Of a DNA stretch of 64,000 bases, positions 7,331-35,727 are shown piece by piece. Within the stretch, counting starts at the first letter, position 1; every line of letters begins with the position of its first letter. A program made the position numbers and the translations under genes. The stretch lies in the sequence record NC_048779.1; one strand, written 5' to 3'. The notes under the pieces are model-generated. The model worked only from the letters and a program-made list of their open reading frames with translations. It did no database searches and had not been told where the DNA came from.

Positions 7331-7807
7331 TTAATTCTGACCTTCTGATAAAATTGGTTTTTCTATCGGCACTGTGTACAAACAACAATTGTAGAAAAAC
7401 TGTTGTCGACCCAATTCATCATAAACAGGTTGCTCGTCCTTCAACACGGGCCTGCGTACTCGTTTGAATTTAAACTCAAACGTAGGGACACGAGAACTCA
7501 ATAAAAGTTGTCCCAGACTCACACGCTTAGTACTCCCTCCTAGGGTGATACTAGGTCGGCTGGTATCAGCGGGATAGACCAATGCGGTCAAATCCCCTTC
7601 TTCATTGTAAATGAAGTTGGTTAGTTTTAATACCGCATGTTGAGGGTTGATTCGATCATCCAGAGGCTCTCCGTATTCAACTAATAAGAAACGTTTTTTC
7701 TCTGGTCTCTTCTTTAAGGTGCGTAGTAGTTTGGTGACGCTTAGATCTATTTGGTCTTTACGAAAAATAGTAAGTCGACGACGATTAACAATATTGACAG
7801 AACTCAT
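7331..7807 (-). CDS. Hypothetical protein (~158 aa; start revised to MSSVNIV)
   Basis: The ORF-track start at 7924 overlaps the upstream gene by 92 nt; ATG at 7807 has SD AGGAG. Confidence 0.7.
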   Translation of the reverse strand: MSSVNIVNRRRLTIFRKDQIDLSVTKLLRTLKKRPEKKRFLLVEYGEPLDDRINPQHAVLKLTNFIYNEEGDLTALVYPADTSRPSITLGGSTKRVSLGQLLLSSRVPTFEFKFKRVRRPVLKDEQPVYDELGRQQFFYNCCLYTVPIEKPILSEGQN

Positions 7808-7832
7808 AACTCTCCTAATAAAAAGAAGGGGA

Positions 7833-8668: not shown

Positions 8669-10076
8669 CGCATACATTGTTACACCCGTTAGGATGCTTT
8701 TTATTCGCCCTTCAGGAAAATACTAAGTAGTTGTAGATTTTGCCCAATCTATCAACTCTTCCCTTTGCTCTTTAGTGATTGTTTCTAGGTAATAGAACTT
8801 CCAACCATCAACCACTTTGGTTACACCACGCTTTAATGCTGTTGTAACCATCTTTTTACTTAAATCGTGTGTTGTTCTAAATTCATAAGCTGACTCAAAA
8901 AGGATTATTGTTTCACCTTCTTTGGCAGCTAACACTTTCTTAGGAGCACGAGATAACAACTTCTGTTTTAACTCATCAGTCAAAAAGTCAAAGTTATTTG
9001 TACTCTCTATTAGAACGTAGTGTTTTTGGAACAACTTTGGAAAGTCGCTGGTAGAAATACATTGCGAGACGGTCTGTGACCTACACTTGAAGTGTTCAGA
9101 AACCGCTTTCATAGTTGGAAACTGTTTGACTTCACCGGTAAAAAGATCCATGCATGATATCTCTCTACGGTAGGTCTGTTGCTCCCTTTCATGTCTTCTT
9201 AATTTCTGGACGCGTTTATCCGACGATTTAAGATGTTCTACTTTCCAGCCGTTTAACAACAACCCCTCTTTAATACTTTTCCAAACTTCAGCTATTTCGC
9301 ATGAGAAGAATTCGCACGCATGAAGGAAGTTGTTCAAGTACTTTGTTTCATCATCTTTGGTTATAACGATGAGTGGTCGTTTAGTATAACGATTTAAAAG
9401 TGTCGCATGAACGTTGTTTTGTTCCGGTGTTACCCAATCTACATTAGTAGACTCATTGTTTGTTATGTCTCCATCTATGTGGTTCCCATGTTGATTTTCC
9501 TCAGGCTCACCATGAAAGGTTGTTAATATGAGCCTGTGGACCCCTTTGGTGGTAAAAGTGCCATCAGGTAGCACCACCATAGTTGTTATGTATCCGTCAC
9601 CGTTGGTGTAGTATTCAACCTCTGTTTTATCAGGGTTGTAAATCCGTCCATCTTCAGTGGCGTAATAACCTTTAGTGTTAGGTATTTCTTTCATATTCAA
9701 CTTTTTTTGAAGGACTACGGGTCGTTACTCCGCTGAATAACCGGGCAAGGTCATTCTCCGATGCTTTCACACCGGGCGAGACTATATCTTAGCTTCATCA
9801 TTCCTTGAATCCACTCTTCCTGTTCGAGGAGACTTCTCCCCACCTAGTCGTTGAACGTTACTCTACGTGAGAGTCTTCGCTGCTGATTTCCGATTGATAA
9901 GAGCCCTTAGCACTCCACACTTATCCTTGGTGAAGTTGGTTTTCCATTAAGCTTAGGTCATCTCTATTTTTATTTCTGACTTTCGTCCACATTCATAGTC
10001 GATCACTCAACTATTGTAGTAAATAGAGCTTTACGGGGTTCCAGCAATTAAAGAAGTTTAAAGACGGCAATAGTTC
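8669..10076 (-). mobile_element. Group I intron, 1408 nt, in the RNAP catalytic motif
   Basis: P1 pairs exon GACGGU with intron GCCGUC with a U-G wobble at the splice site. Core elements: P AATTGCTGGAAC (10038-10049), Q AATCAGCAG (9880-9888), R GTTCAACGACTA (9845-9856), S AAGATATAGTCT (9779-9790). Ends in G. Confidence 0.92.
8723..9700 (-). CDS. Intron-encoded HNH homing endonuclease with C-terminal DNA-binding repeats, 325 aa
   Basis: GYYATEDGRIY (NUMOD4-like), KGVHRLILTTF...GNHIDGDITNN...NVDWVTPEQNNVHA (HNH); lies 3' of the intron catalytic core. Confidence 0.9.
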   Translation of the reverse strand: MNMKEIPNTKGYYATEDGRIYNPDKTEVEYYTNGDGYITTMVVLPDGTFTTKGVHRLILTTFHGEPEENQHGNHIDGDITNNESTNVDWVTPEQNNVHATLLNRYTKRPLIVITKDDETKYLNNFLHACEFFSCEIAEVWKSIKEGLLLNGWKVEHLKSSDKRVQKLRRHEREQQTYRREISCMDLFTGEVKQFPTMKAVSEHFKCRSQTVSQCISTSDFPKLFQKHYVLIESTNNFDFLTDELKQKLLSRAPKKVLAAKEGETIILFESAYEFRTTHDLSKKMVTTALKRGVTKVVDGWKFYYLETITKEQREELIDWAKSTTT

Positions 10077-11498
10077 ACCGTCGAAATCAGCGTTAAAATT
10101 GGACACAGACAGTATTGGGAGTCCAATAGATTGGTCTCCCAGATCTCGTTTAATTCGCGCAAAGAAAGTGCGACGAGACAAATACTGAATGGATGGCATA
10201 CGACCTGCTTTACACACGATGTCATTGCGTTCTTCATGGTAAGTGAAGAAAGCGTCGATATCGGGGTCGAGGTAGTGGGCAGCTTTACTGATCTTGGTCA
10301 GCGCAGCCATCGGTGAGTAACCTTTACGATACAAATGGGACAGTATCTGTTTCTCTAACTGGGCGAGCGCCATTATCCATGGAACTTCTATCATTCCCGG
10401 ATTATGTATCCCCGTCTTAGAGGTGATTACTGAACGACCTGTCATCGGTAAAGAGCCAGACGCCACCAGTTTACGCGCCGCTCCCGGTTTAGGGAACATG
10501 AAGTCCTTTAAATGGGCTGAGTTTTGTGCCGCTAACGCCACTATCCCCTTACCAACACGATCAATGGATTCTTGGATATCGAATTCATTGACTTGGTATA
10601 GGTCAGTGTTATCTTTAGTATCAGCGATGGACATGTAAGTTGAATCCATCTTTAGCTGACTTGAAGAAGCGTAACGTTCTTTACCCGCCTTTTCAATAAC
10701 GGTAGAGAGTTTATTAGGTATCGGGAGATACTTAGTGAAAACAATATCCTTGTAATCAAAGTAACCCAACATAATCTCTTTAGCATCGGAATTCTTAAGT
10801 GCTGTTAAAGTTCGACCTTCACCTAACAAAAAGTAATCCATGATGGTATCAGCATTAACAACAAACTCGTTGAGATCGAAACGAGTCATCAGACGTTTTA
10901 AATGAGATTGGAGATCACGGAGTTTTTCCGAACTTTGTGAATTGACCTTACGACGATAGGTTGGATCGATGATGTAAGTGATGATCTCTATCTTAGGTGA
11001 AGCTGTTGCGATCTTTTGCAAGTATGTCTTGTAGAACGCAGGGTTGATGAATGATTGGACACCAGTAGGTAGGCGTAACCAAACTTTGGTCGATAACTCA
11101 GTATCAACTAAGCGCTCCACTTGGTTACCACAGTTTCTACAAACCCGTCCAGAACCAATTAAATGGTTTCCCTTTAAAGGTTTATCACAACCACACGACG
11201 CGATGGTTTCAAAAGTGTCCGTATCAAAGTCCACACGAATCAGCTTCTCCAAACGTTCACGATCTTCTTCTAAACAGAAGTCGTAGTCGTTCAGATAAAC
11301 AGGTTGCGACTTAGATGTATCATGGGCGTAATTGAAATCACGGAAGTCTGGATAAAGCGGAGCGTAGTAACTAGGATCGTCGAAGAATTTCTTCCCGGAT
11401 TGTTCCTGATAACGCTGGAACTGTTTGATAGGAAGCAAATCGTCAAAAGATTCCTTTGCTAATACCTCTACTGCAATATCTTTCGTTGGAGACGACAT
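10077..11498 (-). CDS. Exon 1 of nvRNAP beta' N-terminal subunit (phiKZ gp55-like), 474 aa; spliced product 533 aa
   Basis: Zn-binding CGC...CRNC; KAGRMPSIQ motif; ends NFNADFDG; directly downstream of chimallin as in phiKZ. Confidence 0.92.
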
Positions 11499-11592: not shown

Positions 11593-13659
11593 TTATGAGT
11601 AAACAATACCAGAAGCATTGCCCACGATACCGCCACCGTTAACCATGTAAGCACCAGAAGCACCTGCTGCCGCGTTTACTGCGTATTCAACAGATGGTGC
11701 GTAGATTGCAACGTTAGATGCAAACGTACCCATAGTACCAGACGCATTTAGGTTACCAAGCTTGTCTAGACATTGACCTAGGAATTCTGCAAACTCTGGT
11801 GCCACGTAGTGACGACGTGAAGTACCAGTGATGTTTACATCATCGTTGATCAGTGTAGGAAGCATAGTAGTCATGCGGTAGCGACGTACTGGCTCTGGAG
11901 TTTGGTTACCATCACCGTACACTGCTTGTAGGTACTGAATCATTGGAGTAGTGTCAGTTGGGCATAGACGGCTTAGGAAGATTTCATCCACTTCTTCTAG
12001 TGAGTGAAGTTCACCGTTGTGCTTAAACGTACCTACTGGATTCAGGATACCAGATTGACATAGAACTGCTTTCTCTGGAGTCCAACCTTTACCAGTTTGT
12101 TTGTTCTCTGAGATGCGACGAGACGCTTCACCGTTAGTGATAGAATCGATCACTTTAACGATTACTAGTTTGTTTTCAGTAGCAGCTTCAGTAGTGCCTA
12201 CAAGGTTAAGTAGGAAGTTGTGAAGTGCTGCTTCGTTACCGAATTCAACTAGGTCGATAGCGTAAGATGCGCGCTCAGCGATGTTACGACGGATCCAAGA
12301 ACTTGTGAAGTCCATGTCTTTTAGACGGGCTTCAGTCATTTTCAGTTTCTCGTCACGCTTACCTAGCGCACCACCAATCATGTCTTCGATACGACGCTCG
12401 ATGTGAGACAGGTTACCACGTGCACCAATCTTAGCCAAGCGTAGAGGCTCAGTAAATAGGTGGTTGTGGTTCACAGTCATGTTCGCGTACAGACCCATTA
12501 GGAATGATGCGATACCTGAGTTGTTACCCATCTGTGCTTGAGCACGAGTATGGTTCATAACTACAACTGCTTGAAGCGGGTGGTAGCCATGAGGGTACAT
12601 ATCGTTCGAGTTCATCATTGGAGAGAACATCGGTTGGATTTGACGGTTCGCCATTTGCGCTGTGTAAACAGCGAACGGAACACCAACCAACAGTACGTTA
12701 GAGTAAGCGTTAACAATACCGCGAGCAGCATCAGCGTTGTATTGCTGACCTTCTTTTGGTGCTGTTTGCAGCTGAACTAACATGTTAGCGCCAGACGGAA
12801 CGCCGTCGATGCTTACTGGAGTACCAGATTGATTTTTCATCGCTTCGATACGCGCAGTCGCACATTTAGTTGGACCGTACGCATTTTCGTCGATTTGACC
12901 TTTAGCGTTGATGAATGGAGTTTTCAGCGTTACACCATGCTTAACCATTGTTTTGGTTAGCGTAGTTTTCATGCCGCGTTCCCACTCTTCAAGGATAACG
13001 TTCGCCAGTAGGTCAGCCATACCAATCTCTTTGTTTTCTGGAGTTTGGTAAGACTCTAGGTCGATAACGCGAGACGTGATAAGTTGAACGTCGTTTACAC
13101 CGTCGTTAGCGTAACGAAGTTTCATTGATTCGATTAGGTTACGAACCACTTCTTTACTCATGTAACGGTTTGGTGTTTGTTTGATTTGCACCTTCGCCGG
13201 CATGTTTTGACCCATCACACCGTTAGTGTGAATTTCTTCCAGCTGGATAGCGATCTCGCGGTTAGAGAACTGCACTGGAGCAATGATCATTGCATTACCT
13301 ACGCGACGAGCTAGGATGATACCCGGTAATACTGGAGACAGGTTAGTGTCCATCAGGATTACTTCTTGAGGGATGATTTGCTGTAGCGCAGGGTTGATAG
13401 AAGATTTGTCTTTCTCTTCACGGAAGTCATTCAACTTCTTAACAATCTCGTTCACAACAGGAACGCTACGACCGCCAGACATCATTGAGTTCATACCTAG
13501 AACGTTAGCGAAATCTAGTAGTGAGTTGGTTTTGTTAGATGACATTTTTTCTGCTCCTTGTTGTGCAGTTTGATTTTTGGTTGGTTGTTGGGTTTGTGGG
13601 TTGTTAGAAGATTGATCATTCTCTTCGATTTCATCCCAGCTATTTTTGCTTGAGATCAT
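11593..13659 (-). CDS. chmA: Chimallin, major phage nuclear shell protein (688 aa, or 650 aa from ATG 13545)
   Basis: Size, strongly biased high-expression codon usage, and position immediately upstream of nvRNAP beta' and divergent from a gp53-like gene, as in phiKZ gp54. Confidence 0.85.
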   Translation of the reverse strand: MISSKNSWDEIEENDQSSNNPQTQQPTKNQTAQQGAEKMSSNKTNSLLDFANVLGMNSMMSGGRSVPVVNEIVKKLNDFREEKDKSSINPALQQIIPQEVILMDTNLSPVLPGIILARRVGNAMIIAPVQFSNREIAIQLEEIHTNGVMGQNMPAKVQIKQTPNRYMSKEVVRNLIESMKLRYANDGVNDVQLITSRVIDLESYQTPENKEIGMADLLANVILEEWERGMKTTLTKTMVKHGVTLKTPFINAKGQIDENAYGPTKCATARIEAMKNQSGTPVSIDGVPSGANMLVQLQTAPKEGQQYNADAARGIVNAYSNVLLVGVPFAVYTAQMANRQIQPMFSPMMNSNDMYPHGYHPLQAVVVMNHTRAQAQMGNNSGIASFLMGLYANMTVNHNHLFTEPLRLAKIGARGNLSHIERRIEDMIGGALGKRDEKLKMTEARLKDMDFTSSWIRRNIAERASYAIDLVEFGNEAALHNFLLNLVGTTEAATENKLVIVKVIDSITNGEASRRISENKQTGKGWTPEKAVLCQSGILNPVGTFKHNGELHSLEEVDEIFLSRLCPTDTTPMIQYLQAVYGDGNQTPEPVRRYRMTTMLPTLINDDVNITGTSRRHYVAPEFAEFLGQCLDKLGNLNASGTMGTFASNVAIYAPSVEYAVNAAAGASGAYMVNGGGIVGNASGIVYS

Positions 13660-13739: not shown

Positions 13740-13765
13740 ACACCTAGGTTATATAGGACTGAAAA
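13740..13765 (-). promoter_or_regulatory. Candidate chimallin promoter TTTTCAGTCCTATATAACCTAGGTGT
   Basis: Near-copy (23/26) of 7295-7320; intergenic, ~80 nt upstream of the first ATG. Confidence 0.7.
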
Positions 13766-13881
13766 TATTTAGGAACTTCAAAACCTTTCGATTTTATGTC
13801 TCAAATATTTCAATTCTGGTCCTATCCACCCCAACCTTACGGCTGGAGAAAGTTTTATCTACATATAATGGACACACAGTT

Positions 13882-14988
13882 ATGCAAACTTTATTTACCG
13901 AGTTGAGTTCTATGACCAATGCGAGTTACCATTATACAAATGTAACCAATTTATTACGCATGTGTCGATTCAACCAAGAACAGTTTAAAGAGCGGGTGTT
14001 GGAAACCAGCTACCGCTTACCAAATGAACATCCACTGGTTCAGCTAGTGGAGTTTATGCAGATTGATCCTCATTGGACATCCGAGGAATTAGAACAAGTT
14101 ATTGAGTTCAAGCGAGAACGTTGGGCGAGTTCTATTAGTGCTGTCGGTGTATACAACAATGGTAAACTTCACCAAAATGTACTATATAAGCAGGGCTACC
14201 GAGAGCTACTAATATCTTTGCCATCGCAGTTGAACTTTACAGATTATTTAATCACTAACACCGAAGACATCTGCCCCTTTATACCGGTTTACAGTGATTC
14301 TACTGAATTAGACTTTCGACCTACTAAGGATAAGCCTCGCGAAGACCCTGACGGTAAGTTTGCCATCATCGGTATCGACTTCACCGCACTTGCGGTTGGG
14401 TATTGGCGTTATTTGAAAGACGCGGTGACTTACGGCTTTGATCCTAAACCGCACTTATGGTTGCCTAAGTTCCCTTTACTTAATGCTCAACTTCTTGGTA
14501 ACCGTTTGGTAGCTTTAAACGCGTTATACCAACACGCAGTCACAGGACGTGATTTCGATGAGTTATTAACAGTCCCACGAACTACTTACGCGATTAATTC
14601 CGTAGAACGTTTGTTAGTAAAGACTGTCGAGAAAATGGATAACTTATTAACTAAGAAGCCATTAAGGAATTTAGACGCGTTGATTGATGATTTAGAGATC
14701 TACGATACTCTTCCAAATTCCCCTAATAACCCGGTAGTATGGAAAGACCCCGAACAATACGGACTTTACCTTAAATCGCGATGGGTTTGGAATTTCTCGT
14801 ATATGAAAGTCCTCACTGTTTTATTCCACTATAACCAGATAACTCGAACAAACAATGGATTCTTACAGAGTCATGTTCGTCGATGGTTACGGCAAGACGT
14901 TAAATTATCAACACAACAGATACGTAACCCTTTATTAGAGAAACGTTATGTGGCGATGCGAAATGAGTTAGAAAAAAGAATACAGTAA
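13882..14988 (+). CDS. Conserved Chimalliviridae protein (phiKZ gp53-like), 368 aa
   Basis: Long ORF divergent from chimallin; assignment by synteny. Confidence 0.7.
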   Translation: MQTLFTELSSMTNASYHYTNVTNLLRMCRFNQEQFKERVLETSYRLPNEHPLVQLVEFMQIDPHWTSEELEQVIEFKRERWASSISAVGVYNNGKLHQNVLYKQGYRELLISLPSQLNFTDYLITNTEDICPFIPVYSDSTELDFRPTKDKPREDPDGKFAIIGIDFTALAVGYWRYLKDAVTYGFDPKPHLWLPKFPLLNAQLLGNRLVALNALYQHAVTGRDFDELLTVPRTTYAINSVERLLVKTVEKMDNLLTKKPLRNLDALIDDLEIYDTLPNSPNNPVVWKDPEQYGLYLKSRWVWNFSYMKVLTVLFHYNQITRTNNGFLQSHVRRWLRQDVKLSTQQIRNPLLEKRYVAMRNELEKRIQ

Positions 14989-20414: not shown

Positions 20415-21380
20415 TTACCAGACCATCCCGGAATTGTCAGAGCCCTCTGTGAGGTCCTTAGAACGGGACTTAGTGAATTGGGTCTGACGTTCTACCGCTT
20501 TTTCTTTAGAACGCTCCATATCATTGATGATCTGTTCTGTTAGGCTATCGTACTCAAGCATCATGTGTAGTTCACCTGTATCGTTAGGAGTGATCGCATC
20601 TGGATGCATTACGCCCGTCACACGATACCCTTTACCGATTTGAACGGAACGGATGTCGTTACGAGAGCTGTATAGAGAGAAACTCGCTACCGCACTACCT
20701 TGACGTTTATCGATAGTCAGACCATCATAGAACTCAATACGAGTAAGAGATGGTGGGATATCGACCGCGCTAGAGTAATCCAACAAATGACGGATGTCCT
20801 CGTAGTCTGACTCTTCGTGTTTATCCGTTAAGAACAGCGATAGTAGGTTGAGACGCTCAACAGCGATTTTGTTTAACTCACCACGAGTTAAAGCTTCGTC
20901 GTTTTGTAACACATCCATTACGACCGGCATATCAAAATGCTTACGCTGACCATCCAGAGAACGCAGAGTCGCAATCGTGTTGTCCAGTTCGATGTCCGTG
21001 GTTTGATCGATCACGAGGAACGAAACTACCGGAATACCTGCTTCCATAAGGGCACGAACTAGGAAAGGACCAATGGTAGAACCTGACGCACCCGCACCAC
21101 TGTAAATCACAACGTTGAAATCCCCCGCTTTATGTTTCACCAACATTTGGTTAACAAAATCAGGAATGAGATCACGATTCAAAGTACGCTTCTTACCACC
21201 ACCGCGAGTGTTCGGTGGACACTCTAAAATGAACGAGTCATCATCCGGTTTATTGTTGGTAGACGTATCTAAACCGATGAACTCTACTTTAGAGATAGGA
21301 AGGTTTCTTAACGACTTCTTCCATGCAGAACCGATGTTAATACCCGCACCACCAATACACCATGCACGTAATGTAGACAT
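20415..21380 (-). CDS. phuZ: PhuZ phage tubulin, 321 aa
   Basis: CIGGAGINIG, GLDTS, RGGGKKR, SGAGASGSTIG tubulin/FtsZ GTPase loops; Chimalliviridae context. Confidence 0.93.
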   Translation of the reverse strand: MSTLRAWCIGGAGINIGSAWKKSLRNLPISKVEFIGLDTSTNNKPDDDSFILECPPNTRGGGKKRTLNRDLIPDFVNQMLVKHKAGDFNVVIYSGAGASGSTIGPFLVRALMEAGIPVVSFLVIDQTTDIELDNTIATLRSLDGQRKHFDMPVVMDVLQNDEALTRGELNKIAVERLNLLSLFLTDKHEESDYEDIRHLLDYSSAVDIPPSLTRIEFYDGLTIDKRQGSAVASFSLYSSRNDIRSVQIGKGYRVTGVMHPDAITPNDTGELHMMLEYDSLTEQIINDMERSKEKAVERQTQFTKSRSKDLTEGSDNSGMVW

Positions 21381-21421
21381 ATTAAACTCCTTTAAAGTTT
21401 AGTTAAAAATATTTAAAATGC

Positions 21422-21851
21422 AAAAAAGCACCATCCCCTTCGCCGGGGATGGTCAAAGCAGTGGAACTCAGTGCCAATACTGAAATTACCCGAACTGGAT
21501 TCTTACGCGGTCGAAGAACCCAGCCGGCTAGCCTCGGCTTAGCATCCCTTGGTGGAGTGTAGGAGCTGAGGAAACACTCTCCATTTTTAAAGCGGTCAGG
21601 GGTGTACCGCTGTGGACGCTGAGTTAAAGGCTCAAGCGTCCTACGAACAAAAGTAGTGGCTTCTGTCCGAATAGGGTGGTTCAGGGGATGGCTTTAGTGA
21701 CATCGATGTTGACAAGGAGGACTCCCCCCTGAACCAGAATAGTTGTGAGCGGTTGTAATGAAGGAATAACTTCCTAGGTCGGACTCGCGGCATACACCTT
21801 TTCTTTTCGGACACGCTAGTCTAGCTAAACCTAATCTTGTACCGCTCACAT
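21422..21851 (-). ncRNA. Putative ~430-nt structured ncRNA of unassigned family
   Basis: No ORF >=60 aa. Perfect helices 21841-21850/21744-21753 (10 bp) and 21677-21687/21726-21736 (11 bp); 8-bp crossing pair 21806-21813/21664-21671; several more hairpins; promoter-like motif at the 5' end and terminator at the 3' end. Confidence 0.7.
21430..21453 (-). terminator. Terminator closing the structured element
   Basis: ACCATCCCC/GGGGATGGT stem followed by GCTTTTTTG. Confidence 0.8.
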
Positions 21852-21859
21852 ATAATGTA
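21848..21859 (-). promoter_or_regulatory. Promoter-like motif TACATTATATGT at the 5' end of the structured element
   Basis: Near-identical motifs at 25611-25622 and 30194-30205; resembles phiKZ early TATATTAC and contains the late TATG start motif. Confidence 0.6.
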
Positions 21860-21878
21860 CCTTGGGTTAGGAATTAAT

Positions 21879-22580
21879 TTAAAGACGGGTGTGTTGTTGA
21901 TAACGTTTAGGTCCCATTCCATATTTTTTCTCGAACTTCACTACGAAGTAACTAAAGTCGAGGAAGCCTAACTCCTCAGCGAGTTGACGCACCGACTTAT
22001 AGTAATTAGGTAGCTTGGCATGCGCTTGATTTAAACGCAAGTCTAATACGAATTGTTTCAACCCAAATCCATAGTGATGATTGATAATCAACTCTATTTC
22101 TTGGTGGGTTAAACGGAATCGGTCCGAGAGGGTCTGGATACTTAAACCGGTATCTTTGTAATGTTTCTTGACATGATCTAACAAAAACGTCTGACGTTGC
22201 ACCGTTAACTTGGGATGGGATTTAAACAAACCCCAAGCTAAATCACTGGTCTTCGGTCGGTTGCGATAATTTAAAGGGTACGTGCCAAATTGCTTAATGA
22301 AATTTTCTCTCAGCGTTTTATGATTAGTGTACCCAATTGCTCTGGCGATAGAGGTTAGGTTAAGATCTGTGTCGTCTAAGAGTTTCTTCGCTTCTAACAT
22401 TTTTAAATGGGTGATGTAATCATACAAACTCCCTTCACCTGCATCACGGAATAGTTTAATGACTCTAGTGGGTGAGATCCCTGTTTTCTTTAAAACTAAT
22501 TCCGAAGCATTAGGTTCCAAACAATATTTCTTAGCCGCATTTTTGAGCTTCTTGAACTCTCTGGAATTCTTATCAGACAC
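21879..22580 (-). CDS. Tandem double AraC/XylS HTH-domain protein, 233 aa
   Basis: ...AKKLLDDTDLNLTSIARAIGYTNHKTLRENFIKQFGTYPLNYR and ...SVRQLAEELGFLDFSYFVVKFEKKYGMGPKRY; no effector domain. Confidence 0.88.
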   Translation of the reverse strand: MSDKNSREFKKLKNAAKKYCLEPNASELVLKKTGISPTRVIKLFRDAGEGSLYDYITHLKMLEAKKLLDDTDLNLTSIARAIGYTNHKTLRENFIKQFGTYPLNYRNRPKTSDLAWGLFKSHPKLTVQRQTFLLDHVKKHYKDTGLSIQTLSDRFRLTHQEIELIINHHYGFGLKQFVLDLRLNQAHAKLPNYYKSVRQLAEELGFLDFSYFVVKFEKKYGMGPKRYQQHTRL

Positions 22581-23298
22581 AAGCGCCTCTCAAAGTTTCC
22601 CGGAGTTCAACGATATTAACCCCGTAGACTTCTTGGTATTGCTTCCGTAAATAGGTCGCACTACAAGAACCTACAGTAGTCGCCAAGTCTGTAATCTTAA
22701 TACTTGGATTTTTGTGGAGTAACTCCTTAGCTAATTTCATCCTAGTATCCTTTCTCCATTCACGATAGGTTTTACCGTAATAGTGTTCAAACATTTCACT
22801 TAAGCTACGATCTGGTAAACCAAACTTCTTTTCTACATCGGCGTAATTGAAATTGACTTTGATGTTTTTAAGTAGGTAATTCAATATCTTCTCACGCAAC
22901 TCATTAGGATAATATCGGTCCATAGTTTCTTTAGAATAAGAATCCATGGTCGGAACCTCGAGGGAATCCGTGTAATCTTCACGAGGGTGTCGTTTAAAGT
23001 AAGCCTTGTACTCTTTGGTAAAAGATTGGAAGTGAGAATACCCAACGTGGGCTCCAGCTAGTGTAGGTCTGATGCCCGATTCTAGCAAAGCTTTGGCTTT
23101 AACTAAGCGTTTACGTCGAAGATACTCACCCGGGGTGGTATTACGTTGTTCAGCAAACAAACGGTAGACATCCGGGATAAACACACCTAGTTGATGACTT
23201 AAGTCTTTGACCGTGACTTTTTCTAGGTAGTGTTCATTTATCCATTTGTCCAGATCTTCCATTAAACGAATTCTGGATTCTTTATCTACAGGGTACAT
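22573..23298 (-). CDS. Tandem double AraC/XylS HTH-domain protein, 241 aa
   Basis: TTPGEYLRRKRLVKAKALLES...VGYSHFQSFTKEYK and RMKLAKELLHKNPSIKITDLATTVG...YQEVYGV. Confidence 0.88.
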   Translation of the reverse strand: MYPVDKESRIRLMEDLDKWINEHYLEKVTVKDLSHQLGVFIPDVYRLFAEQRNTTPGEYLRRKRLVKAKALLESGIRPTLAGAHVGYSHFQSFTKEYKAYFKRHPREDYTDSLEVPTMDSYSKETMDRYYPNELREKILNYLLKNIKVNFNYADVEKKFGLPDRSLSEMFEHYYGKTYREWRKDTRMKLAKELLHKNPSIKITDLATTVGSCSATYLRKQYQEVYGVNIVELRETLRGACV

Positions 23299-24464
23299 AA
23301 TTCAGTTTCCTTTATTTTACCCAGACGGATATCGTCTTCTCTAATACATAAGTCGGCGTTAGTTTTAACAAAGCGAACAAACTGCTTGGTTTTGTTACGA
23401 CGAGTAAGTGGACCTTTATGTTTACGGATCTCCGCAGGAGTCAGTCCGTAGTTAGCCATTAAGTGTCTTCTGATGTCGTATTCATAATCCGAACCAACCT
23501 TCCTTAAGATCTTAGAAAACTTCCAACGAGTGTTTTGTAAAAAGTACACCACTATTTCCAATCGGATGAATAAGCGCGCCTTACTAGGTAACATGCCTGT
23601 GTAAAGAGTAAACATTCTTTCCCAAGAAGAAGTGTTTACTCCGTAAAATTCTCTCAGCTCAGTTAAGTGGGGACGATTTTCAAGCAGGTTTTCGGTAACG
23701 TTATCCACTATCTCTTCCATGAGGGAAGGGAGTATCCAGACGTTTTCACCATGGACTTTGGCCCACATACCGATAGATTTTGATTCACCAAATTCACTGG
23801 TAGTCATACCGTACTTTGCTTTAAAAGCTTTATTAAGTCCAGTAGGGGCGTTGTAGATGGTCATTTCCAGTAAACGGGTTTCTTTATACCCGTGAGTTTT
23901 GATTTGCTCGGCAACGTACTCTAGTTGCTTATTTAACAAATAAGCCCTAGGAGTTACTCCGTGTAGTTCAATGAATTTCTGTCTAATGTAAGTGGTGGTG
24001 TAAACACTGTCGTTTATTAATACATTGACGTCTTTGTATAAGTACGGATTAAGGTCGATCTTTTCAACGATGGAGCTGATAACCGCATCGACTACACCTA
24101 AACTCGGTCTTTTTGATTTTAACCCCATGCGCGCACGGACCTTAGTAGGGCGCTCTCCAAAAACGGATAAATACCAAACGTAAAAGTTTGATGTTTTATC
24201 ATACCCTAAGGTTTTAGCGATTTCTTCTAGTGAAAGTTCACCGTCAGAGACTAAACGCTTAGCTAAATCCTTACGTAACTCTTTCAAGTGATGTGTAGGG
24301 GTTTCTAAACCTTGATTTAGAAAACGCACAGTCAATACATCTGGGGCGATGTTTTGCATTTTTGCAATGTCGACGAATTTACGTTTTTCTTTATAATGCG
24401 CATTAATGTTCGCTATTGTGGTCAAAACGATTTCATCGTCGATTCCTAGTGTATCTATGGACAT
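23286..24464 (-). CDS. Triple AraC/XylS HTH-domain protein, 392 aa
   Basis: Three ~100-aa units ending FGERPTKVR, YGMTTSEF and YGLTPAEIR; first unit has LSLEEIAKTLGY. Confidence 0.82.
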   Translation of the reverse strand: MSIDTLGIDDEIVLTTIANINAHYKEKRKFVDIAKMQNIAPDVLTVRFLNQGLETPTHHLKELRKDLAKRLVSDGELSLEEIAKTLGYDKTSNFYVWYLSVFGERPTKVRARMGLKSKRPSLGVVDAVISSIVEKIDLNPYLYKDVNVLINDSVYTTTYIRQKFIELHGVTPRAYLLNKQLEYVAEQIKTHGYKETRLLEMTIYNAPTGLNKAFKAKYGMTTSEFGESKSIGMWAKVHGENVWILPSLMEEIVDNVTENLLENRPHLTELREFYGVNTSSWERMFTLYTGMLPSKARLFIRLEIVVYFLQNTRWKFSKILRKVGSDYEYDIRRHLMANYGLTPAEIRKHKGPLTRRNKTKQFVRFVKTNADLCIREDDIRLGKIKETELCTL

Positions 24465-24501
24465 AATAAATCCTTTAATGAATATTTAACAAACAACAAT
24501 A

Positions 24502-24529
24502 ATCCTGCTTGCTGAAGAGCAAGCAGGAT
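24502..24529 (-). terminator. Hairpin terminator upstream of the AraC operon
   Basis: ATCCTGCTTGCT/AGCAAGCAGGAT 12-bp stem. Confidence 0.75.
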
Positions 24530-24535
24530 ACTGGT

Positions 24536-25315
24536 TTAAACAGCGAGACGATTGTCCCACTCTACAGGAATGCCTCCCGCTCGCTTATAGGCGTTCAGGA
24601 ACGCTTCTCTAACCGTCTTGGGTTTTACTTCTAGTCTAACTAAGACATGGTCTTGGTCAGCTTGTTTCAGCGCAGCAACGTGATGGGGTTCAGAAATGTC
24701 TTTAGGATCAATTTCCACCCACCCGTCTTCTAATGCTACTTCCGCTCGACGACTAACTACTCGCTTAGCGTAGTAGTCACTCAGATCATCCCCCGTCACA
24801 ACGCAAGACTTCAATAAATAAATAATGTCGTCTACGCTGACTTCCAACATATCCCCGTCGATACTGTTGATCAAATCATAACACCCATTTTGATTTGGGT
24901 AGATTTCTTGCCAGTACCAATCTTTGTTTCGGTGATCTACATAAAGTTCGTAGATCTTGCCTTCCCCATCCACAGCGTTCCCCAAGAACCCCGGCAAGAT
25001 GTATAGCTCTAAACCTTCCCACTTAATCACCTTACACACATACGGGGCGTGAACCACGTAGTCTTCGTAAGTCGGCAATAAGATTTCTTTAAAGTGCAAT
25101 TCTTCCGCTAAGTCTACTAAATGAATAGGGAACCCTTCTACGAGCTTTGTTAAATGAGTTAACCATCCTTGAGCTCGTGTTAACCGAACTTGCTTTCGGC
25201 CCTTAACGGTAAAGCTAACGTTTTGTTGACGATAAGGTTTCCCTTTAGCAGTCACTATCATTCCGTGCAAATGATGTAAACTCGTATTATCAATTTGTTT
25301 TACTAATTCTTTCAT
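24536..25315 (-). CDS. Hypothetical protein, 259 aa, with a NUMOD4-like segment but no HNH residues
   Basis: YILPGFLGNAVDGEGKIY resembles the N-terminus of HNH homing endonucleases. Confidence 0.7.
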   Translation of the reverse strand: MKELVKQIDNTSLHHLHGMIVTAKGKPYRQQNVSFTVKGRKQVRLTRAQGWLTHLTKLVEGFPIHLVDLAEELHFKEILLPTYEDYVVHAPYVCKVIKWEGLELYILPGFLGNAVDGEGKIYELYVDHRNKDWYWQEIYPNQNGCYDLINSIDGDMLEVSVDDIIYLLKSCVVTGDDLSDYYAKRVVSRRAEVALEDGWVEIDPKDISEPHHVAALKQADQDHVLVRLEVKPKTVREAFLNAYKRAGGIPVEWDNRLAV

Positions 25316-25381
25316 GTTGAATCTACTCCTACTAACGTTATTATCCTAATAACTTAAATGACTCAGTTTTATATCCCTTTG

Positions 25382-25389
25382 GTAATATA
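25382..25389 (-). promoter_or_regulatory. Early promoter motif TATATTAC
   Basis: Exact phiKZ early consensus, ~65 nt upstream of ATG 25315. Confidence 0.65.
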
Positions 25390-25435
25390 GAGATATAATT
25401 CCTTTATCTGATTACAGCAAGTTTATTACATGAAC

Positions 25436-25622
25436 CTATACTCGTTATACGTAGTACACTCCTTTTATCGTGTTTACGTACTTCGTACTACAACACTCAC
25501 CGTGACTATTCGTACCTCATAGATCACTCTAAGGAGTACTACTATAACTCGTATGTAAAAATAACCCTTTCCCATCCTTTTCAGGGGGTCTTCGACGGAT
25601 TCTTTTTAGTACATATAATATA
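25436..25622 (-). ncRNA. Putative structured intergenic RNA (element 2)
   Basis: 18-bp interrupted stem (25444-25464/25531-25548) enclosing two hairpins (multi-way junction); TATATTATATGT motif at the 5' end. Confidence 0.45.
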
Positions 25623-25643
25623 TTATCCGTTAAGAAATAACTT

Positions 25644-26402
25644 TTAGAGTATGAAGTGAGTTTTAAGTCCGCTAAGTTCGTTATAAGTACCACGTAAAGT
25701 GACTACTTCTTGCCTTAGGGGAACACGAGTAATAATCAACTCAGTAGTCATGCAATCGGAATTGATGGTTGTAGGGTGGGTGATGGCGTGTTCTGACTTA
25801 AACCAGTTGAGCTTAGCACGAGGTTTCACCATGCGCATGAAAGCTTCAAGTTCTTTATCTGTTTTAGAAGGATCTAACCACATGTGTTGAGTAATGGTTT
25901 GTACCATGGCTTTGATACCCGGTTCGGTCAACACATTGAGCTTGAAGTTAAAGTGACGCTTACGGAACCAATCTTCATTTGCACGGTCCTTGAATAAACC
26001 CCAAGGAAGTTCCCAAGTGAGTTCATACCCATTACCTTCTCTGAATTCTAACTTGAATAAAAAGTCAGGATTCAGTTTATTGTAAGATTCCGTTATCGTA
26101 ATGCTACTGCGTTTACGATTATGGTGTTCGATCGTGAACTGTCGGTTGTCGTAATTTGCCGGGGATATACGGAAGTGGTTTTTGTAAGCAAAGTTCCACG
26201 ATTGGGCTCGGTCTTGGTGGAGTTGATTAGAGACATCGATAATCCATTGGAACGCATCATCGAAACTACGATAAGCGTACGCCAGTTTGGACATCATCTC
26301 TAAACGGGATTCAAAGGTATGGAGGGTTGTAGGTGGGTGAGGAATAGGCATGCCGTGTCGGTTATAACCCATGTGTAAAGTGAAAGGACATTGTTCGTTC
26401 AT
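25644..26402 (-). CDS. Hypothetical protein, 252 aa (possible member of the local paralog family)
   Basis: ORF; GYELTWELPW...W motif shared with neighbours. Confidence 0.75.
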   Translation of the reverse strand: MNEQCPFTLHMGYNRHGMPIPHPPTTLHTFESRLEMMSKLAYAYRSFDDAFQWIIDVSNQLHQDRAQSWNFAYKNHFRISPANYDNRQFTIEHHNRKRSSITITESYNKLNPDFLFKLEFREGNGYELTWELPWGLFKDRANEDWFRKRHFNFKLNVLTEPGIKAMVQTITQHMWLDPSKTDKELEAFMRMVKPRAKLNWFKSEHAITHPTTINSDCMTTELIITRVPLRQEVVTLRGTYNELSGLKTHFIL

Positions 26403-26468
26403 AATACGTTCCTTAAGGCTCTAAGAGCTTAATTAAAAAGAGATTGGTATGATTTATCGGATGAAGCA

Positions 26469-26495
26469 CTAGGAGGTCCTCTAAGGACCTCCTAG
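26469..26495 (-). terminator. Hairpin terminator
   Basis: CTAGGAGGTCCT/AGGACCTCCTAG inverted repeat. Confidence 0.7.
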
Positions 26496-26499
26496 GAAC

Positions 26500-27453
26500 T
26501 TATATGACCATGAAAGAGATTTCACGGGTATGTATACTTCCCCACGGTATTAATGACTGATCAACGGTCATCACCCAAACGTTACCGTGAGGTGTTGGTT
26601 TGAAAGTTAACAGATCGTTGTTCGTGTTATGGTAGTGTTCCTTTAACACGCGACAAACTGGAGCATGATCGAAAGAACCCAATTCTTCGTAAACAATCTC
26701 CGTAATGTGTTTGTACCATTCCACACGATCTTCACGAGATGCAGGGACCAAGTAAGTTAGCTCATCTCCAGAAGGTAAAGGGATTACGAATCGCAAGGTA
26801 GGGTTACCATATTGTTTTAATCCCATTTGTAAACGATCACCTTGGATGTGTGGGAAATCCAACAGAGGTTTACCTAGCTCACTTAAATGCGCCTGAGTAG
26901 CGATCTCGTGTTCTACGTATTTCTCTAGATCCCCAAGCGCTACCTTCGCCAACAACAAGTAAAGTTTTTCTCTTACGGACACTAGCAGTTCGTGGGGTTG
27001 ATATATCAAGATTGGATTAGGTTCAAATGACAAACTAGGAGTCAATTCACAGGGCATCGAGTAACGAATGTATTTTTCTTCCGTGTTCTTAGTTAGTCTT
27101 GTATCGAAATTGTAAGTTTCCGCTGCCTTTAGGAAGTTACGCATAATCGCACCTGAAACTCTTTTATTCCATGGATACGGAATGAGTTTTTCAAAGTCAT
27201 GACCGTATTTTGGATTATAGTCGAATGTGAAGTCCCTTTGCTTGATATGTGTCATACCTTTAGTGGTGATTGTGATCGTATCACCTTCTTTCCAATAAAA
27301 CGACAGCGACACCCAAACACCATCGGGCATCTTTACTGCGTAAAGCTCATGCGTCATGGCTTTCGAGTAGTCATTCTTGATAATGGTAGGGATAGAATGT
27401 AGAGCGTGTTGAAATAAACCCTTTAAACCTAGGTTAATTAGTTTGGTATTCAT
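26500..27453 (-). CDS. Hypothetical protein, 317 aa, paralog family
   Basis: TITITTKGMTHI and ELTYLVP...W motifs. Confidence 0.8.
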   Translation of the reverse strand: MNTKLINLGLKGLFQHALHSIPTIIKNDYSKAMTHELYAVKMPDGVWVSLSFYWKEGDTITITTKGMTHIKQRDFTFDYNPKYGHDFEKLIPYPWNKRVSGAIMRNFLKAAETYNFDTRLTKNTEEKYIRYSMPCELTPSLSFEPNPILIYQPHELLVSVREKLYLLLAKVALGDLEKYVEHEIATQAHLSELGKPLLDFPHIQGDRLQMGLKQYGNPTLRFVIPLPSGDELTYLVPASREDRVEWYKHITEIVYEELGSFDHAPVCRVLKEHYHNTNNDLLTFKPTPHGNVWVMTVDQSLIPWGSIHTREISFMVI

Positions 27454-27794
27454 GCTGCTTTCCTGTTCAGTAAGTAGTTAGTGATGACGCGTTTTAGGGG
27501 ATCCAACCAAAAGGTCCCGCGATCTAAGTCGAACAATACCTGAGCTTCATGTTCTAAGTCAGGTGCGTTTAGTGTTAAGTTAAGTACTCGTTCTATGGAT
27601 CCTGCCAGACCCTTACGGTCTAGCAGGCGTAATCCATTGTAACGGTGTACGATTTCGTTGATGATAAGGAGTAAGTCGTTACCTTCTAATTTTAAAGTAA
27701 CCTTACCTTCGTGGGTTAAGACCTCACCTTTACCTTCGCTAATAGTTTGTTCTACTAACGACAAAGCCATTTCTTGGTAATTATGTTTTTCCAT
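27450..27794 (-). CDS. Hypothetical protein, 114 aa
   Basis: ORF with 4-nt overlap to the next gene; SD AAGGA. Confidence 0.75.
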   Translation of the reverse strand: MEKHNYQEMALSLVEQTISEGKGEVLTHEGKVTLKLEGNDLLLIINEIVHRYNGLRLLDRKGLAGSIERVLNLTLNAPDLEHEAQVLFDLDRGTFWLDPLKRVITNYLLNRKAA

Positions 27795-27825
27795 TTTCCT
27801 TGGTCCAACTGACGTTTAATTTATG

Positions 27826-27951
27826 TTATTTGCCCGGTACGAGTAGCACATGGATGTCTCTTGTGAAGAGATCTTTATCCAAGAACAAATTGATTTCATC
27901 TGTTTCTGAATTTTTATCTAGGTGACCGTAATGGGTTGGCTGAATTAGATT
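27826..27951 (-). pseudogene. Start-less 41-codon fragment resembling paralog C-termini
   Basis: NLIQPTHYGHLDKNSETDEINLFLDKDLFTRDIHVLLVPGK*; compare DYGSISVDEDNETALVNV (334 aa) and HTREISFMVI (317 aa). Confidence 0.4.
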
Positions 27952-28949
27952 TTAAGTGGTTTGGTTTCGATTTTAGTCGTGAATTCGAAAACACGTTTTT
28001 GGTGGTATGGTAATAAATGCTCGTGTACGTTCACTAGAGCCGTTTCGTTGTCTTCATCGACTGATATACTACCATAATCATTATTAAGGGTTTCTAGCTC
28101 CTTACAGAGACGATACGCCTCCTTTAAGTCGATGTGTCTGCTGAGTAAGAAAGTATGCTTCAAGTGTGTCACTAAATCCCTTACCCAATGTTGTCGAACT
28201 AAGTATTCTCGAGGAACTAGAAATTCCATTAACCCTTCACCGGTATCTAACACCAAGTAAATTAATTCACGACGGTATTCTAAGTAAAGTGTGTATTGAG
28301 TAACGTTACTTATCGGGAGTTTGATAATACGCTCTCGCTTAGGTGTTAACCGAGGACCCGGTAGTGGCATCAGCATTAACCGCTCTAAAATGTCTGGGAG
28401 TTCGTATAACGCTTTGTTAAGTAGTGTCTTAGCCAAACACTCTCGTTGCACTACTACATGACCGTGAGCGGCGTAGTGCTCTGCTCCTCGAGTTATATGA
28501 GAAAGTAACGTGGTAGACATCGGACACATCCCTTCTTTCGTACTGATCTTTACTCCTTCGTCAGTAGGTTCTATGATAATGTCTTCTACTCCCAAATCCC
28601 CAGCTTGAACCAACTCAATGAACGCATGGCGATGTAAGTCCCCAACTAACGAAAGGTTTTGGCGGTAAACCTTATCTTGGATGATGACGGTTGGCTCAAC
28701 ATACACCTCAGTAAATAAGTTACTTAAGTTTAAGTGACGTAAACCTTCGGTAACGATCGTACAACCATTACGTGTTCGTGCTACCGCTCTAATAAGCACC
28801 GTATCCATCCCCCAAGGAAGTTTAAACTTAGCGATAACTAAGTCTTCTCCTAACGGTTTTATTGCACTAACTCGAGGAGCGAGTTGTAACCACTCTTTGA
28901 CTAACGAAGCCAAAGCTAATTGTAATTTAGATTTTGTTACTAAGTCCAT
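27945..28949 (-). CDS. Hypothetical protein, 334 aa, paralog family
   Basis: N-terminus aligns by eye with the 156-aa neighbour (W..LA...VIA...LPW..D...T.V.EG). Confidence 0.8.
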   Translation of the reverse strand: MDLVTKSKLQLALASLVKEWLQLAPRVSAIKPLGEDLVIAKFKLPWGMDTVLIRAVARTRNGCTIVTEGLRHLNLSNLFTEVYVEPTVIIQDKVYRQNLSLVGDLHRHAFIELVQAGDLGVEDIIIEPTDEGVKISTKEGMCPMSTTLLSHITRGAEHYAAHGHVVVQRECLAKTLLNKALYELPDILERLMLMPLPGPRLTPKRERIIKLPISNVTQYTLYLEYRRELIYLVLDTGEGLMEFLVPREYLVRQHWVRDLVTHLKHTFLLSRHIDLKEAYRLCKELETLNNDYGSISVDEDNETALVNVHEHLLPYHQKRVFEFTTKIETKPLKI

Positions 28950-28952
28950 GAT

Positions 28953-29423
28953 TTAAAACTCTCGTTTTTTGTTAATAGGAAAAGCTAGCCCGATATCTTG
29001 GATGGTTTTATGCATAACGGTAAAGTGTCTATCCGTTACTTCGAAGGTAAGCTCCGGTAGTAGTTCCGGCGTTTCTTTAGCTAAGTGGTGCAAAACGTCT
29101 AAGTAACCTTCAGATCGTCTTCTCAAAGCTTCATACGCTTCGTTGAATAACACTTCTTCGTTCATTACGTTTAAACAGATCCCAGTACGATCTACGTAAG
29201 CCATCCCTTCTACGACCACCGTAAAGCTTACGGAGTCTACGGATAATGCTTTCACGACGATTTGTTTATCTTTATCCCAAGGCAACGCAATGCTCGCTAT
29301 GACTTTATGTCCTTGGTGTTTGGTTTTTAAACGCTTAGCGTCCGTAAAGGTAGCGAGTTCTACCCAACCTAAGATCACTGGGATTAGTGCCTTACTTACT
29401 TTAACTCGATTTGCTGCATTCAT
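28953..29423 (-). CDS. Hypothetical protein, 156 aa, paralog family
   Basis: Aligns with the N-terminus of the 334-aa neighbour. Confidence 0.8.
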   Translation of the reverse strand: MNAANRVKVSKALIPVILGWVELATFTDAKRLKTKHQGHKVIASIALPWDKDKQIVVKALSVDSVSFTVVVEGMAYVDRTGICLNVMNEEVLFNEAYEALRRRSEGYLDVLHHLAKETPELLPELTFEVTDRHFTVMHKTIQDIGLAFPINKKREF

Positions 29424-29440
29424 GGTAGTTACTCCTAGTC

Positions 29441-29833
29441 TTATAACTTAATAGGTGGTACGTTGTAATGTAAGATTAATTCATTATTGTGGATAATAGG
29501 TAAATCGATAAAGTCTAGTGCTCTACTACCTATAAAGCTAATTAAACTGTCCTTATCTAAATCCCCGAACGTATTTAACTCTACTCGTTCTCCTAATCCA
29601 TAGTCTAACGTCATATCACTATACCCTAGTTTAACTAACCCTACGGTACGTAACCTATAACGCTCTCCTATTCGCTCTAGGTGAACCTCTAAGCGATAAT
29701 ACGGTGGTTTTAACTTATTACGGACCTCGTAAGTCTTAAGCAGTACTTTATGATCTCCTTCCTCTAGTACTAACCCTACTCCTAAATGTAACGCTCTACT
29801 TACTAATCCCGCTAATACTTCTTTTTCTTTCAT
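29441..29833 (-). CDS. Hypothetical protein, 130 aa
   Basis: ORF; RLRTVGLVKLGYSD motif. Confidence 0.75.
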   Translation of the reverse strand: MKEKEVLAGLVSRALHLGVGLVLEEGDHKVLLKTYEVRNKLKPPYYRLEVHLERIGERYRLRTVGLVKLGYSDMTLDYGLGERVELNTFGDLDKDSLISFIGSRALDFIDLPIIHNNELILHYNVPPIKL

Positions 29834-29884
29834 GGTCTAATAACCTTAATTAACGTATAAATATTCAAAATGCAGTATAAACCC

Positions 29885-29914
29885 TAGTAGGACTCCTTAA
29901 CGGATATCCTACTA
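29885..29914 (-). terminator. Hairpin at the 3' end of intergenic element 3
   Basis: TAGTAGGA/TCCTACTA 8-bp stem. Confidence 0.45.
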
Positions 29915-30205
29915 TGCATCTATGCCTTCTTAACGTATGACTCTTTACCTTAACCACTTCACTCGTGATACTCGTTACGTTGTAAGGAAGTCATACTCTA
30001 TAGTTAGATATATTAATATATTAATATTAATTATCTTGGGCTTTGCCCGATTCTTTTTAACTAACTTTGAACCACTAACCTTGGAACCCTCTCAACCTTG
30101 GAACCCCTCTTTCTCCCCTTACGAAATTGCATTTTAGGGTGCAAAATCATAGGGAAAATCGTTCAAAAAAGTTAGGGTAAAAAGGTTTTTGTAACATATA
30201 ATACA
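29885..30205. other. Intergenic element 3: structured RNA or replication-origin-like region
   Basis: AT-only run 30008-30034, 13-bp direct repeats 30077-30089 and 30094-30106, stem 29935-29942/29989-29996, TGTATTATATGT motif at 30194-30205. Confidence 0.45.
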
Positions 30206-30222: not shown

Positions 30223-30513
30223 TTACTTTTTAGGTTTCTTTAACCAACCTTTGAATTGATTAGATTGGTTTTTAATTAATAACTTATCATCGACCTCACT
30301 CTTATCGATCACCTCCACTTTACAGTTATTACAAGTTTTATTTTCACCTTTAACCACTAAATAAGCGTTAACCATGCGGTACTTCTTACAATCAAATTCA
30401 CCTGAAATGATGAATTTGTGATTAAGGTATTTATCCCCCTTTACGACCTCACAAAGATAATAAACCCGAGGATTAGAAAAACTACCTAACTCATAAATAA
30501 GTCCTTTAATCAC
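30223..30513 (-). CDS. Hypothetical protein, 96 aa
   Basis: ORF overlapping the upstream gene by 8 nt. Confidence 0.7.
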   Translation of the reverse strand: MIKGLIYELGSFSNPRVYYLCEVVKGDKYLNHKFIISGEFDCKKYRMVNAYLVVKGENKTCNNCKVEVIDKSEVDDKLLIKNQSNQFKGWLKKPKK

Positions 30514-35540: not shown

Positions 35541-35675
35541 AGTTTTACCGTATGCGCATTTTATGTACGAACTTTGTTTGGGAAGCGGCGTACATGATAA
35601 CTCCTACTCCTTTTGGTTAAAGTGTGGAACAGAGTGAAGTCATTTGGCGATGACGGATCTTGTGTGTCCAAAGTT

Positions 35676-35711
35676 AATAACTCCTACCTCCCTAGGGAGG
35701 TAGGAGTTATT
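35676..35711. terminator. 36-bp perfect palindrome between convergent tmk and terminase
   Basis: AATAACTCCTACCTCCCTAGGGAGGTAGGAGTTATT plus a long T tract. Confidence 0.8.
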
Positions 35712-35727
35712 TTTTGTTTTTTTTTAT

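Follow-up and report, generated by a model that had tools for sequence, protein, structure and literature searches.

The sequence considered here, a 64,000-nucleotide stretch of record NC_048779.1 (hereafter the window), corresponds by sequence identity to positions 124001-188000 of the genome of Vibrio phage USC-1 (NC_048779 / MK905543), a phiKZ-like, nucleus-forming jumbo phage of the genus Aphroditevirus (Gorgonvirinae) with a genome of 238,099 bp. We propose that the 8-mer ATTATATG, which stands ahead of several long non-coding tracts of this genome, is the promoter of the phage's non-virion multisubunit RNA polymerase (RNAP) in its consensus form, with transcription starting at its G; we put the probability of this reading at roughly 60%. 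Overall, this is a known promoter type in a new form, together with new phage non-coding RNAs (ncRNAs). A preliminary description of the window had interpreted the motif as a dedicated promoter class, perhaps used by both RNAPs, that drives a family of phage ncRNAs, and that interpretation is partly supported by the comparisons below.

Specifically, the same 12-nucleotide (nt) motif had been reported three times on the minus strand, at 21848-21859, 25611-25622 and 30194-30205. All three copies are real and correctly placed, but the invariant part is a 9-mer, ATTATATGT, the remainder consisting of one T and two variable bases, and a fourth copy in the window (13861-13869, minus strand) was overlooked. 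The core that the sites share is ATTATATG(T). Across the USC-1 genome ATTATATGT occurs five times, always in intergenic DNA, and ATTATATG six times, of which 6/6 are intergenic and none lies in coding DNA; intergenic DNA makes up only 5.8% of the genome. Among 280 8-mers of the same composition, whose mean intergenic share is 12%, just ATTATATG and one other word have all of their copies between genes. ATTATATG has the most copies, and the other word, TATAGATT (5/5), is part of a different motif, TCTATATTA, which is described further below.

Conservation was followed in seven relatives from two genera, namely Aphrodite1, PDCC-1, 2 TSL-2019 and phiKT1019 (Aphroditevirus) and pTD1, VP4B and phiKT1028 (Tidunavirus). 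The six ATTATATG sites, numbered E1 to E6 here after the elements that they precede, recur at orthologous places in both genera, while their flanks have diverged. In the 41 instances of these sites (5-8 phages per site), A is found at position -7 in 40, T at -6 in 41, T at -5 in 35 and A at -4 in 32; the TATG that marks phiKZ-type non-virion RNAP promoters then follows with T at -3 in 40/41, A at -2 in 40/41, T at -1 in 40/41 and G at +1 in 39/41, and T at +2 is seen in 33. The onset of conservation is sharp at -7, upstream of which the 41 instances share nothing between sites, so that no conserved element of the -10/-35 type is found there. The motif is also strictly strand-specific relative to the conserved RNA downstream.

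In phiKZ, the late promoter used by the non-virion RNAP consists of T(-3)ATG(+1). Each of the four bases is essential in vitro, and on the non-template strand this TATG is bound by GP123, the beta-like subunit (PMC4666361, PMC12809450). phiKZ and USC-1 belong to one family, which has both multisubunit polymerases; these are part of the chimallivirus core genome (PMC11724907), which is the basis for assuming the enzyme in USC-1. The USC-1 sites resemble the phiKZ late promoter in their invariant TATG, in the lack of a conserved -10/-35 element, in abutting the predicted start and, at some sites, in standing ahead of virion-protein genes. They differ from it in that A at -7 and T at -6 are as conserved as TATG itself, with a preference for T and A at -5 and -4. 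The known element, TATG alone, is far too frequent to account for promoter finding by a phiKZ-type non-virion RNAP, and late promoters of this type have been called unpredictable from sequence in a review (PMC7598289). Because of the extra conserved positions, the sites of this Vibrio-phage lineage can be found from sequence alone, as a putative longer start signal, AT-NN-TATG, that is avoided in genes and kept at individual sites in both genera. If phiKZ is a guide, the polymerase would read TATG on the non-template strand from -3 to +1 and start at the G, and the A-T pair at -7/-6 would be added information in this lineage.

The exact word is the consensus end of a larger class of about 20 sites per genome with the relaxed form ATNNTATG. 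In USC-1 there are 44 copies of ATNNTATG, 19 of them intergenic (43%), compared with a median intergenic share of 7.6% for 60 gapped controls of the same composition; in the whole genome of pTD1, from the other genus, 20/43 copies are intergenic (47%), the highest value against all 60 controls. ATNNTATG is overall about threefold rarer than the controls and is therefore avoided inside genes, and a pTD1 orthologue with the motif retained exists for nearly all USC-1 ATNNTATG sites. For each genome the class thus predicts some 20 start sites, and it brings in two positions not previously recognised, -7 and -6. Copies also face each other on opposite strands in divergent intergenic regions, at 13791 (plus) and 13862 (minus) of the window and at 189691 (plus) and 189746 (minus) of the genome. 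Among the genes that follow the sites are those for an internal head protein and a virion structural protein, and also those for chimallin and PhuZ; other sites are followed by non-coding units.

This distribution does not agree with the suggestion that the motif defines a promoter class dedicated to ncRNAs, since ATTATATG also lies upstream of the chimallin and internal-head-protein genes and most of the approximately 20 sites of the ATNNTATG class are found 11-84 nt ahead of ordinary genes. What holds is that several sites lead into conserved non-coding RNA, which at E1 is bounded by a terminator, but they do not do so exclusively. The untranslated tract after the six exact copies measures 115-469 nt, longer than that after relaxed sites (p = 0.0007). 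The motif had further been thought to merge the motifs of phiKZ's early and late promoters. In jumbo phages, early (virion RNAP) promoters carry a conserved element that is AT-rich, about 10 nt long and has its centre at -10 (PMC7598289), and USC-1 likewise has such a motif, TCTATATTA(C/T), which follows AT-rich DNA 40-75 nt ahead of genes and is expected to be the early promoter type of the virion polymerase; one copy lies inside E2. TATATTA is lacking at E1 and at E3-E6 and is found only at E2, there without the TC prefix, so that the ATTATATG sites are no fusion of early and late signals.

With the promoter reading, the six perfect copies would be placed ahead of unusually long untranslated tracts of different kinds. 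Consensus or near-consensus sites would drive the terminator-bounded ncRNAs E1 (~427 nt), E6 (~95 nt) and E7 (~150 nt), the last of which follows a near-consensus site; E2 and E3 would be conserved non-coding leaders into genes that have a second promoter (E2) or maybe have one (E3, in its AT-rich block); and E4 and E5 would be long leaders of protein genes. Accordingly graded, the signs of a self-contained small RNA gene, i.e. a start signal and a terminator around ORF-free DNA (ORF, open reading frame), are found at E1, E6 and E7 and are incomplete at E2 and E3. The description of E1-E3 as ORF-free structured tracts can be kept as far as no conserved ORF exists in any of them, but the structure is strong in E1, weak in E2 and confined to the 3′ half of E3.

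The E1 motif (21849-21856, minus strand; predicted +1 the G at 21849) heads a structured non-coding RNA of ~427 nt (21422-21849, minus strand), which lies between three AraC-like regulator genes directly upstream and phuZ, the gene for the tubulin PhuZ (20415-21380, minus strand). In the eight phages the site reads ATT(A/G)TATG (given as ATTGTATG), ATACTATG or ATGTTATG, and its invariant part is therefore AT..TATG. The consensus fold of the five Aphroditeviruses contains 126 predicted pairs, 20 of which are changed on both sides, with an alignment-fold z of -10.7 on the minus strand and -7.3 on the plus strand; many G-U pairs in the fold point to the minus strand as the RNA strand. The 5′ domain (21745-21849, minus strand; 98-105 nt) is present in 8/8 phages and is closed by helix P1 (21841-21849 with 21745-21753), the first pair of which is formed by the predicted +1 G in all eight. 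Six of the nine P1 pairs are compensatory and 97% of cells are paired, as against 33-45% in slid controls, and 0/500 shuffles match this helix. At the other end, an intrinsic terminator (21420-21453, minus strand), made up of a 9-bp G+C-rich stem and a T run, is kept in 8/8 phages with loop and stem altered, and the phuZ start codon follows 40 nt on. There is no recognisable promoter between this terminator and phuZ, which is therefore probably expressed by read-through. E1 is kept in the Tidunaviruses, which have lost phuZ (PMC11724907), and is thus not merely a phuZ leader. No conserved ORF is found in E1 among the phages compared, and the element, which reaches about 570 nt in relatives, is known only from these eight related Vibrio/Photobacterium phages.

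Two smaller features overlap E1. The RefSeq ORF gp140 (37 aa; window 21449-21562, plus strand) is annotated on the opposite strand inside the element and its length is not conserved among relatives; it is probably not a gene. In addition, a conserved hairpin loop of E1, CCUUUAA (window 21560-21580), is complementary to the region of the phuZ ribosome-binding site, UUAAAGG (21385-21400). The loop is missing in the phages without phuZ, and a match of 7 nt could be due to chance.

Two further terminator-bounded small RNAs had been overlooked in the first reading of the sequence. E6 (genome 113717, plus strand; outside the window) is a unit of ~95 nt after the gene for an RNAP beta fragment and comprises two covarying hairpins and a terminator, the 5′ hairpin beginning at the predicted +1 G; the adjacent split RNAP beta-subunit gene gave no match among solved structures. 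E7 (35558-35725, plus strand), flanked by the genes for thymidylate kinase and the terminase large subunit, is a candidate small RNA gene of ~150 nt in which ATTTTATG is followed by a hairpin that starts at +1 and then by a bidirectional terminator (35676-35725). Its motif reads ATT(T/A)TATG in five phages, being exactly ATTATATG in phage 2 TSL-2019, and the +1 hairpin covaries. An internal copy of the 5′ arm of the E7 terminator could compete with the terminator. A helix at or next to +1 is thus predicted in E1, E5 (-1/+1), E6 and E7, and may protect the 5′ end of the RNA from decay. As a general rule of the class, the +1 hairpin was rejected, the enrichment not being significant.

Short RNAs are known from related phages: in phiKZ and 201phi2-1, cappable sequencing on Oxford Nanopore instruments (ONT-cappable-seq) has revealed RNAs from premature termination in 5′ leaders as well as intergenic small RNAs (PMC10914365, PMC11512511). 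The USC-1 units are like these in combining a phage promoter (here predicted), an intrinsic terminator within 70-250 nt and read-through into the next gene, and in being conserved among related jumbo phages. E1 is unlike them in being much larger, multi-domain and covarying, and in persisting without phuZ; no sequence relation of E1 to the phiKZ and 201phi2-1 short RNAs was found. In phiKZ, where an ncRNA has been reported near gp40, no long gap like that of USC-1 lies immediately before phuZ. In being long, multi-helix, phage-borne and supported by covariation, E1 resembles ROOL, GOLLD, OLE and raiA, large structured ncRNAs of bacteria and phages, from which it differs in lacking a match to any Rfam 15 model; a search of E1-E3 at gathering and at lax thresholds (E <= 10) gave nothing credible. 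Additional relatives for covariation analysis were sought in IMG/VR, which held the same reference genomes only, and in a metagenome scan, which gave chance matches only.

At E2, the motif (25612-25619, minus strand; predicted +1 at 25612) is invariant in 7/8 phages, pTD1 having TATAG, and it overlaps a 12-bp palindrome, ATAATATATTAT. The adjoining core of ~175 nt (25438-25612, minus strand) is ultraconserved and non-coding: its identity to phiKT1019 is 100/97/91% in 100-nt windows against a mean of 55%, the top of a 17-kb comparison, and when 11 kb were used as a query, nothing but this core matched VP4B. A 33-codon ORF in E2 is broken in the Tidunaviruses and has no spaced ribosome-binding site, which leaves no conserved ORF. 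The predicted fold consists of a hairpin and a three-way-junction domain (25451-25543, minus strand) with a closing stem, two hairpins and the junction words CCTTAGAGT and ACGGTGAGT. The fold is weakly supported by the modelling (single-sequence z = -2.6, alignment-fold z = -1.9) and by compensatory changes in two basal pairs of the closing stem. No terminator was found after E2; the tract contains an early-type promoter motif, TCTATATTAC (25381-25393, minus strand), of which CTATAT(T/A)AC is kept in all relatives, and the next gene (24536-25315) begins 68 nt beyond it.

Outside the window, a second ultraconserved non-coding element occupies genome positions 74760-74900 (minus strand); in relatives, among them pTD1, its identity is 92-98%. 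The element has in common with E2 the junction layout and the two 9-nt words CCTTAGAGT and ACGGTGAGT, whereas the helices differ. The genes that follow the two elements are not paralogous, and the shared design is therefore no gene-specific cis-regulator. In VP4B part of the 74.8-kb element is replaced by E2-like sequence, and the element is preceded by a G-rich and AT-rich block resembling that of E3. A wider family defined by CCTTAGAGT-gap-ACGGTGAGT was sought in IMG/VR and GTDB, where the extra matches were within the number expected by chance and are not used as evidence; one set of them resembles group I introns and two lie inside long ORFs.

The third tract begins with the E3 motif (30195-30202, minus strand; predicted +1 at 30195), which is invariant in 6/8 phages. 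In its middle part (30003-30107, minus strand) a G-rich sequence of ~17 nt is present as three direct repeats, together with a short hairpin and an AT-rich palindromic block of 35 nt; the number of repeats varies between phages, and this part is 94/91% identical to phiKT1019. Two conserved hairpins make up the 3′ part (29872-29996, minus strand), which is kept in seven phages ahead of the gene at 29441-29833. The alignment-fold z is -4.5 for the 3′ half and -0.8 for the 5′ half, where no fold is conserved, and no terminator was found after E3. The words said to be shared by E2 and E3 (25598-25608 with 30049-30059, and 25438-25447 with 29968-29977) are present, but not above chance, and the word GATTCTTTTTA is not kept in relatives. 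Treating E1-E3 as a related family, or E2 and E3 as paralogues, was likewise rejected, as pairwise BLAST gave chance-level similarity only and the motif is their sole relation. A gene for an HNH endonuclease lies directly upstream of E3 in PDCC-1, 2 TSL-2019, pTD1, VP4B and phiKT1028; in its place USC-1 has only a 96-codon ORF (window 30223-30513).

E3 could also be something other than a source of ncRNA. It might be a transcription-activated replication origin laid out like those of T4 or the ColE1 type: a promoter, then G-rich repeats (serving as iterons or giving R-loop-prone RNA), then an AT-rich block for unwinding. The repeats, variable in number, and the AT-rich palindromic block rank with the best-conserved sequence in this region, the 5′ half is without a conserved RNA fold, and a similar G-rich and AT-rich block exists at genome 74.8 kb. 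Even so, no initiator gene and no switch in GC skew (which was uninformative) points to E3 as an origin, and the two conserved hairpins of the 3′ half are RNA-like; we regard this as an unlikely reading, and one that concerns E3 only.

The remaining exact sites precede protein genes. E4, the fourth ATTATATG of the window (13862-13869, minus strand), lies 203 nt upstream of the gene for chimallin, the nuclear shell protein (11593-13659, minus strand). It is kept in five phages and reads ATTCTATG in pTD1, and a covarying hairpin is located downstream at 13829-13848. On the other strand, ATTTTATG (13791-13798, plus strand) faces it 84 nt before a virion structural gene (13882-14988), and 13 nt around this site are kept in five phages and in pTD1. 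These two TATG-type sites (window 13791-13869) face each other across 65 nt; RNAs from the two would share sequence at their 5′ ends and may act as an antisense switch. E5 (genome 86407, minus strand) heads a 115-nt leader of the internal head protein gene and has a covarying hairpin at -1/+1. A third, conserved promoter-like class of ~39 nt (TTAACATACAG .. TTTCA .. TCTATATAAC .. GGTG) was seen at window positions 7296-7334 and 13741-13773 (minus strand) and in five more genome copies, one copy standing directly ahead of the chimallin gene.

The main rival to the promoter reading is that the motif marks an RNA processing site, where a host or phage endoribonuclease cuts between AUUAUAU and G before a stem-loop, so that cleavage of polycistronic transcripts yields small RNAs derived from 3′ untranslated regions together with new mRNA 5′ ends. 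RNase E sites usually lie in an A/U-rich single strand beside a hairpin, a same-strand gene stands immediately before each of E1, E2, E3, E5, E6 and E7 (E4 follows a divergent gene), and avoidance in coding DNA fits a processing site equally well. However, the invariant part coincides with TATG, the start motif established by experiment in phiKZ, and its G stands where the helix starts, the exact 8-mer is far more specific than the known preferences of RNase E, and facing copies on opposite strands of divergent intergenic regions suit promoters better than cleavage, for which reasons we consider processing improbable. A different proposal places the function at the level of DNA, as an operator or other site for a phage regulator, for example one of the three AraC-type proteins encoded beside E1. 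Apart from this neighbourhood, the overlap of the E2 motif with its palindrome speaks for an operator, as do similar AT-rich palindromes in E3 and at genome 74.8 kb. Against it stand the strand specificity of the motif, conservation that runs from -7 into the +1 helix, and the absence of a palindrome at 5/6 sites; moreover, AraC-type domains usually need about 17-20 bp. This appears still less probable than processing.

The reverse complement of the motif, CATATAAT, could serve as a -10 box for sigma-70, which would make the sites host-polymerase promoters on the other strand; the preliminary description had itself raised the TATAAT reading as a caveat. TATAAT is present at every exact site, and variant orthologues still read TAnnnT. 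For a partner -35 hexamer 16-18 bp from TATAAT on the plus strand, only E2 reaches a score of 10/12; E1 and E3 have none, and matches in the region number 37 where shuffles lead one to expect 41. The conserved T(-1), G(+1) and T(+2) would also go unexplained and the transcripts would be antisense to the upstream genes at their 3′ ends, while phiKZ-type infection is independent of host polymerase (PMC4666361). Host promoters are thus very improbable here.

Several observations nevertheless weigh against ATTATATG as a late-type promoter. At E2, pTD1 has lost TATG and kept TATATTAT, and at E3 the motif is missing in pTD1 and VP4B; with pTD1 lacking TATG at one and the motif at the other, those tracts do not depend on the motif in every phage. 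In phiKZ chimallin is made early and in abundance, in poor agreement with a late-type promoter, and the USC-1 chimallin gene has a second promoter-like motif besides E4. Several ATNNTATG sites are situated just before what appears to be the terminator hairpin of the upstream gene, and hairpins at +1 occur at 9/19 of the intergenic ATNNTATG sites compared with 29% in controls (p = 0.065). The gene map, including its figure of 5.8% intergenic DNA, comes from a simple greedy ORF caller, and a search of sequencing runs for USC-1 returned DNA runs only.

To the almost unexplored ncRNA biology of nucleus-forming phages the comparison adds (i) a large covarying RNA beside the tubulin gene, (ii) two terminator-bounded small RNAs and (iii) non-coding stretches that are better conserved than any neighbouring gene. 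A bolder and tentative extension, which we hold to be possible though rather doubtful, is that the consensus sites form an ncRNA regulon of the Gorgonvirinae, with E1 (430-570 nt) and the three-way-junction RNAs of E2 and its 74.8-kb paralogue acting in trans in the nucleus-based infection, and with A-T at -7/-6 as the missing specificity determinant, by which the non-virion polymerase would tell true promoters from thousands of other TATG words.

Elsewhere in the window, no tRNA or tmRNA (transfer and transfer-messenger RNA) was detected by a dedicated search. Two unusually extended stretches lacking long ORFs occur at 7066-7832 (767 nt) and at 62250-64794 (~2.5 kb, with small ORFs only). Rfam gave a single match in the window, to a group I intron (RF00028, 54.8 bits) at 9758-10086 on the minus strand, in a 310-nt gap between two ORFs.

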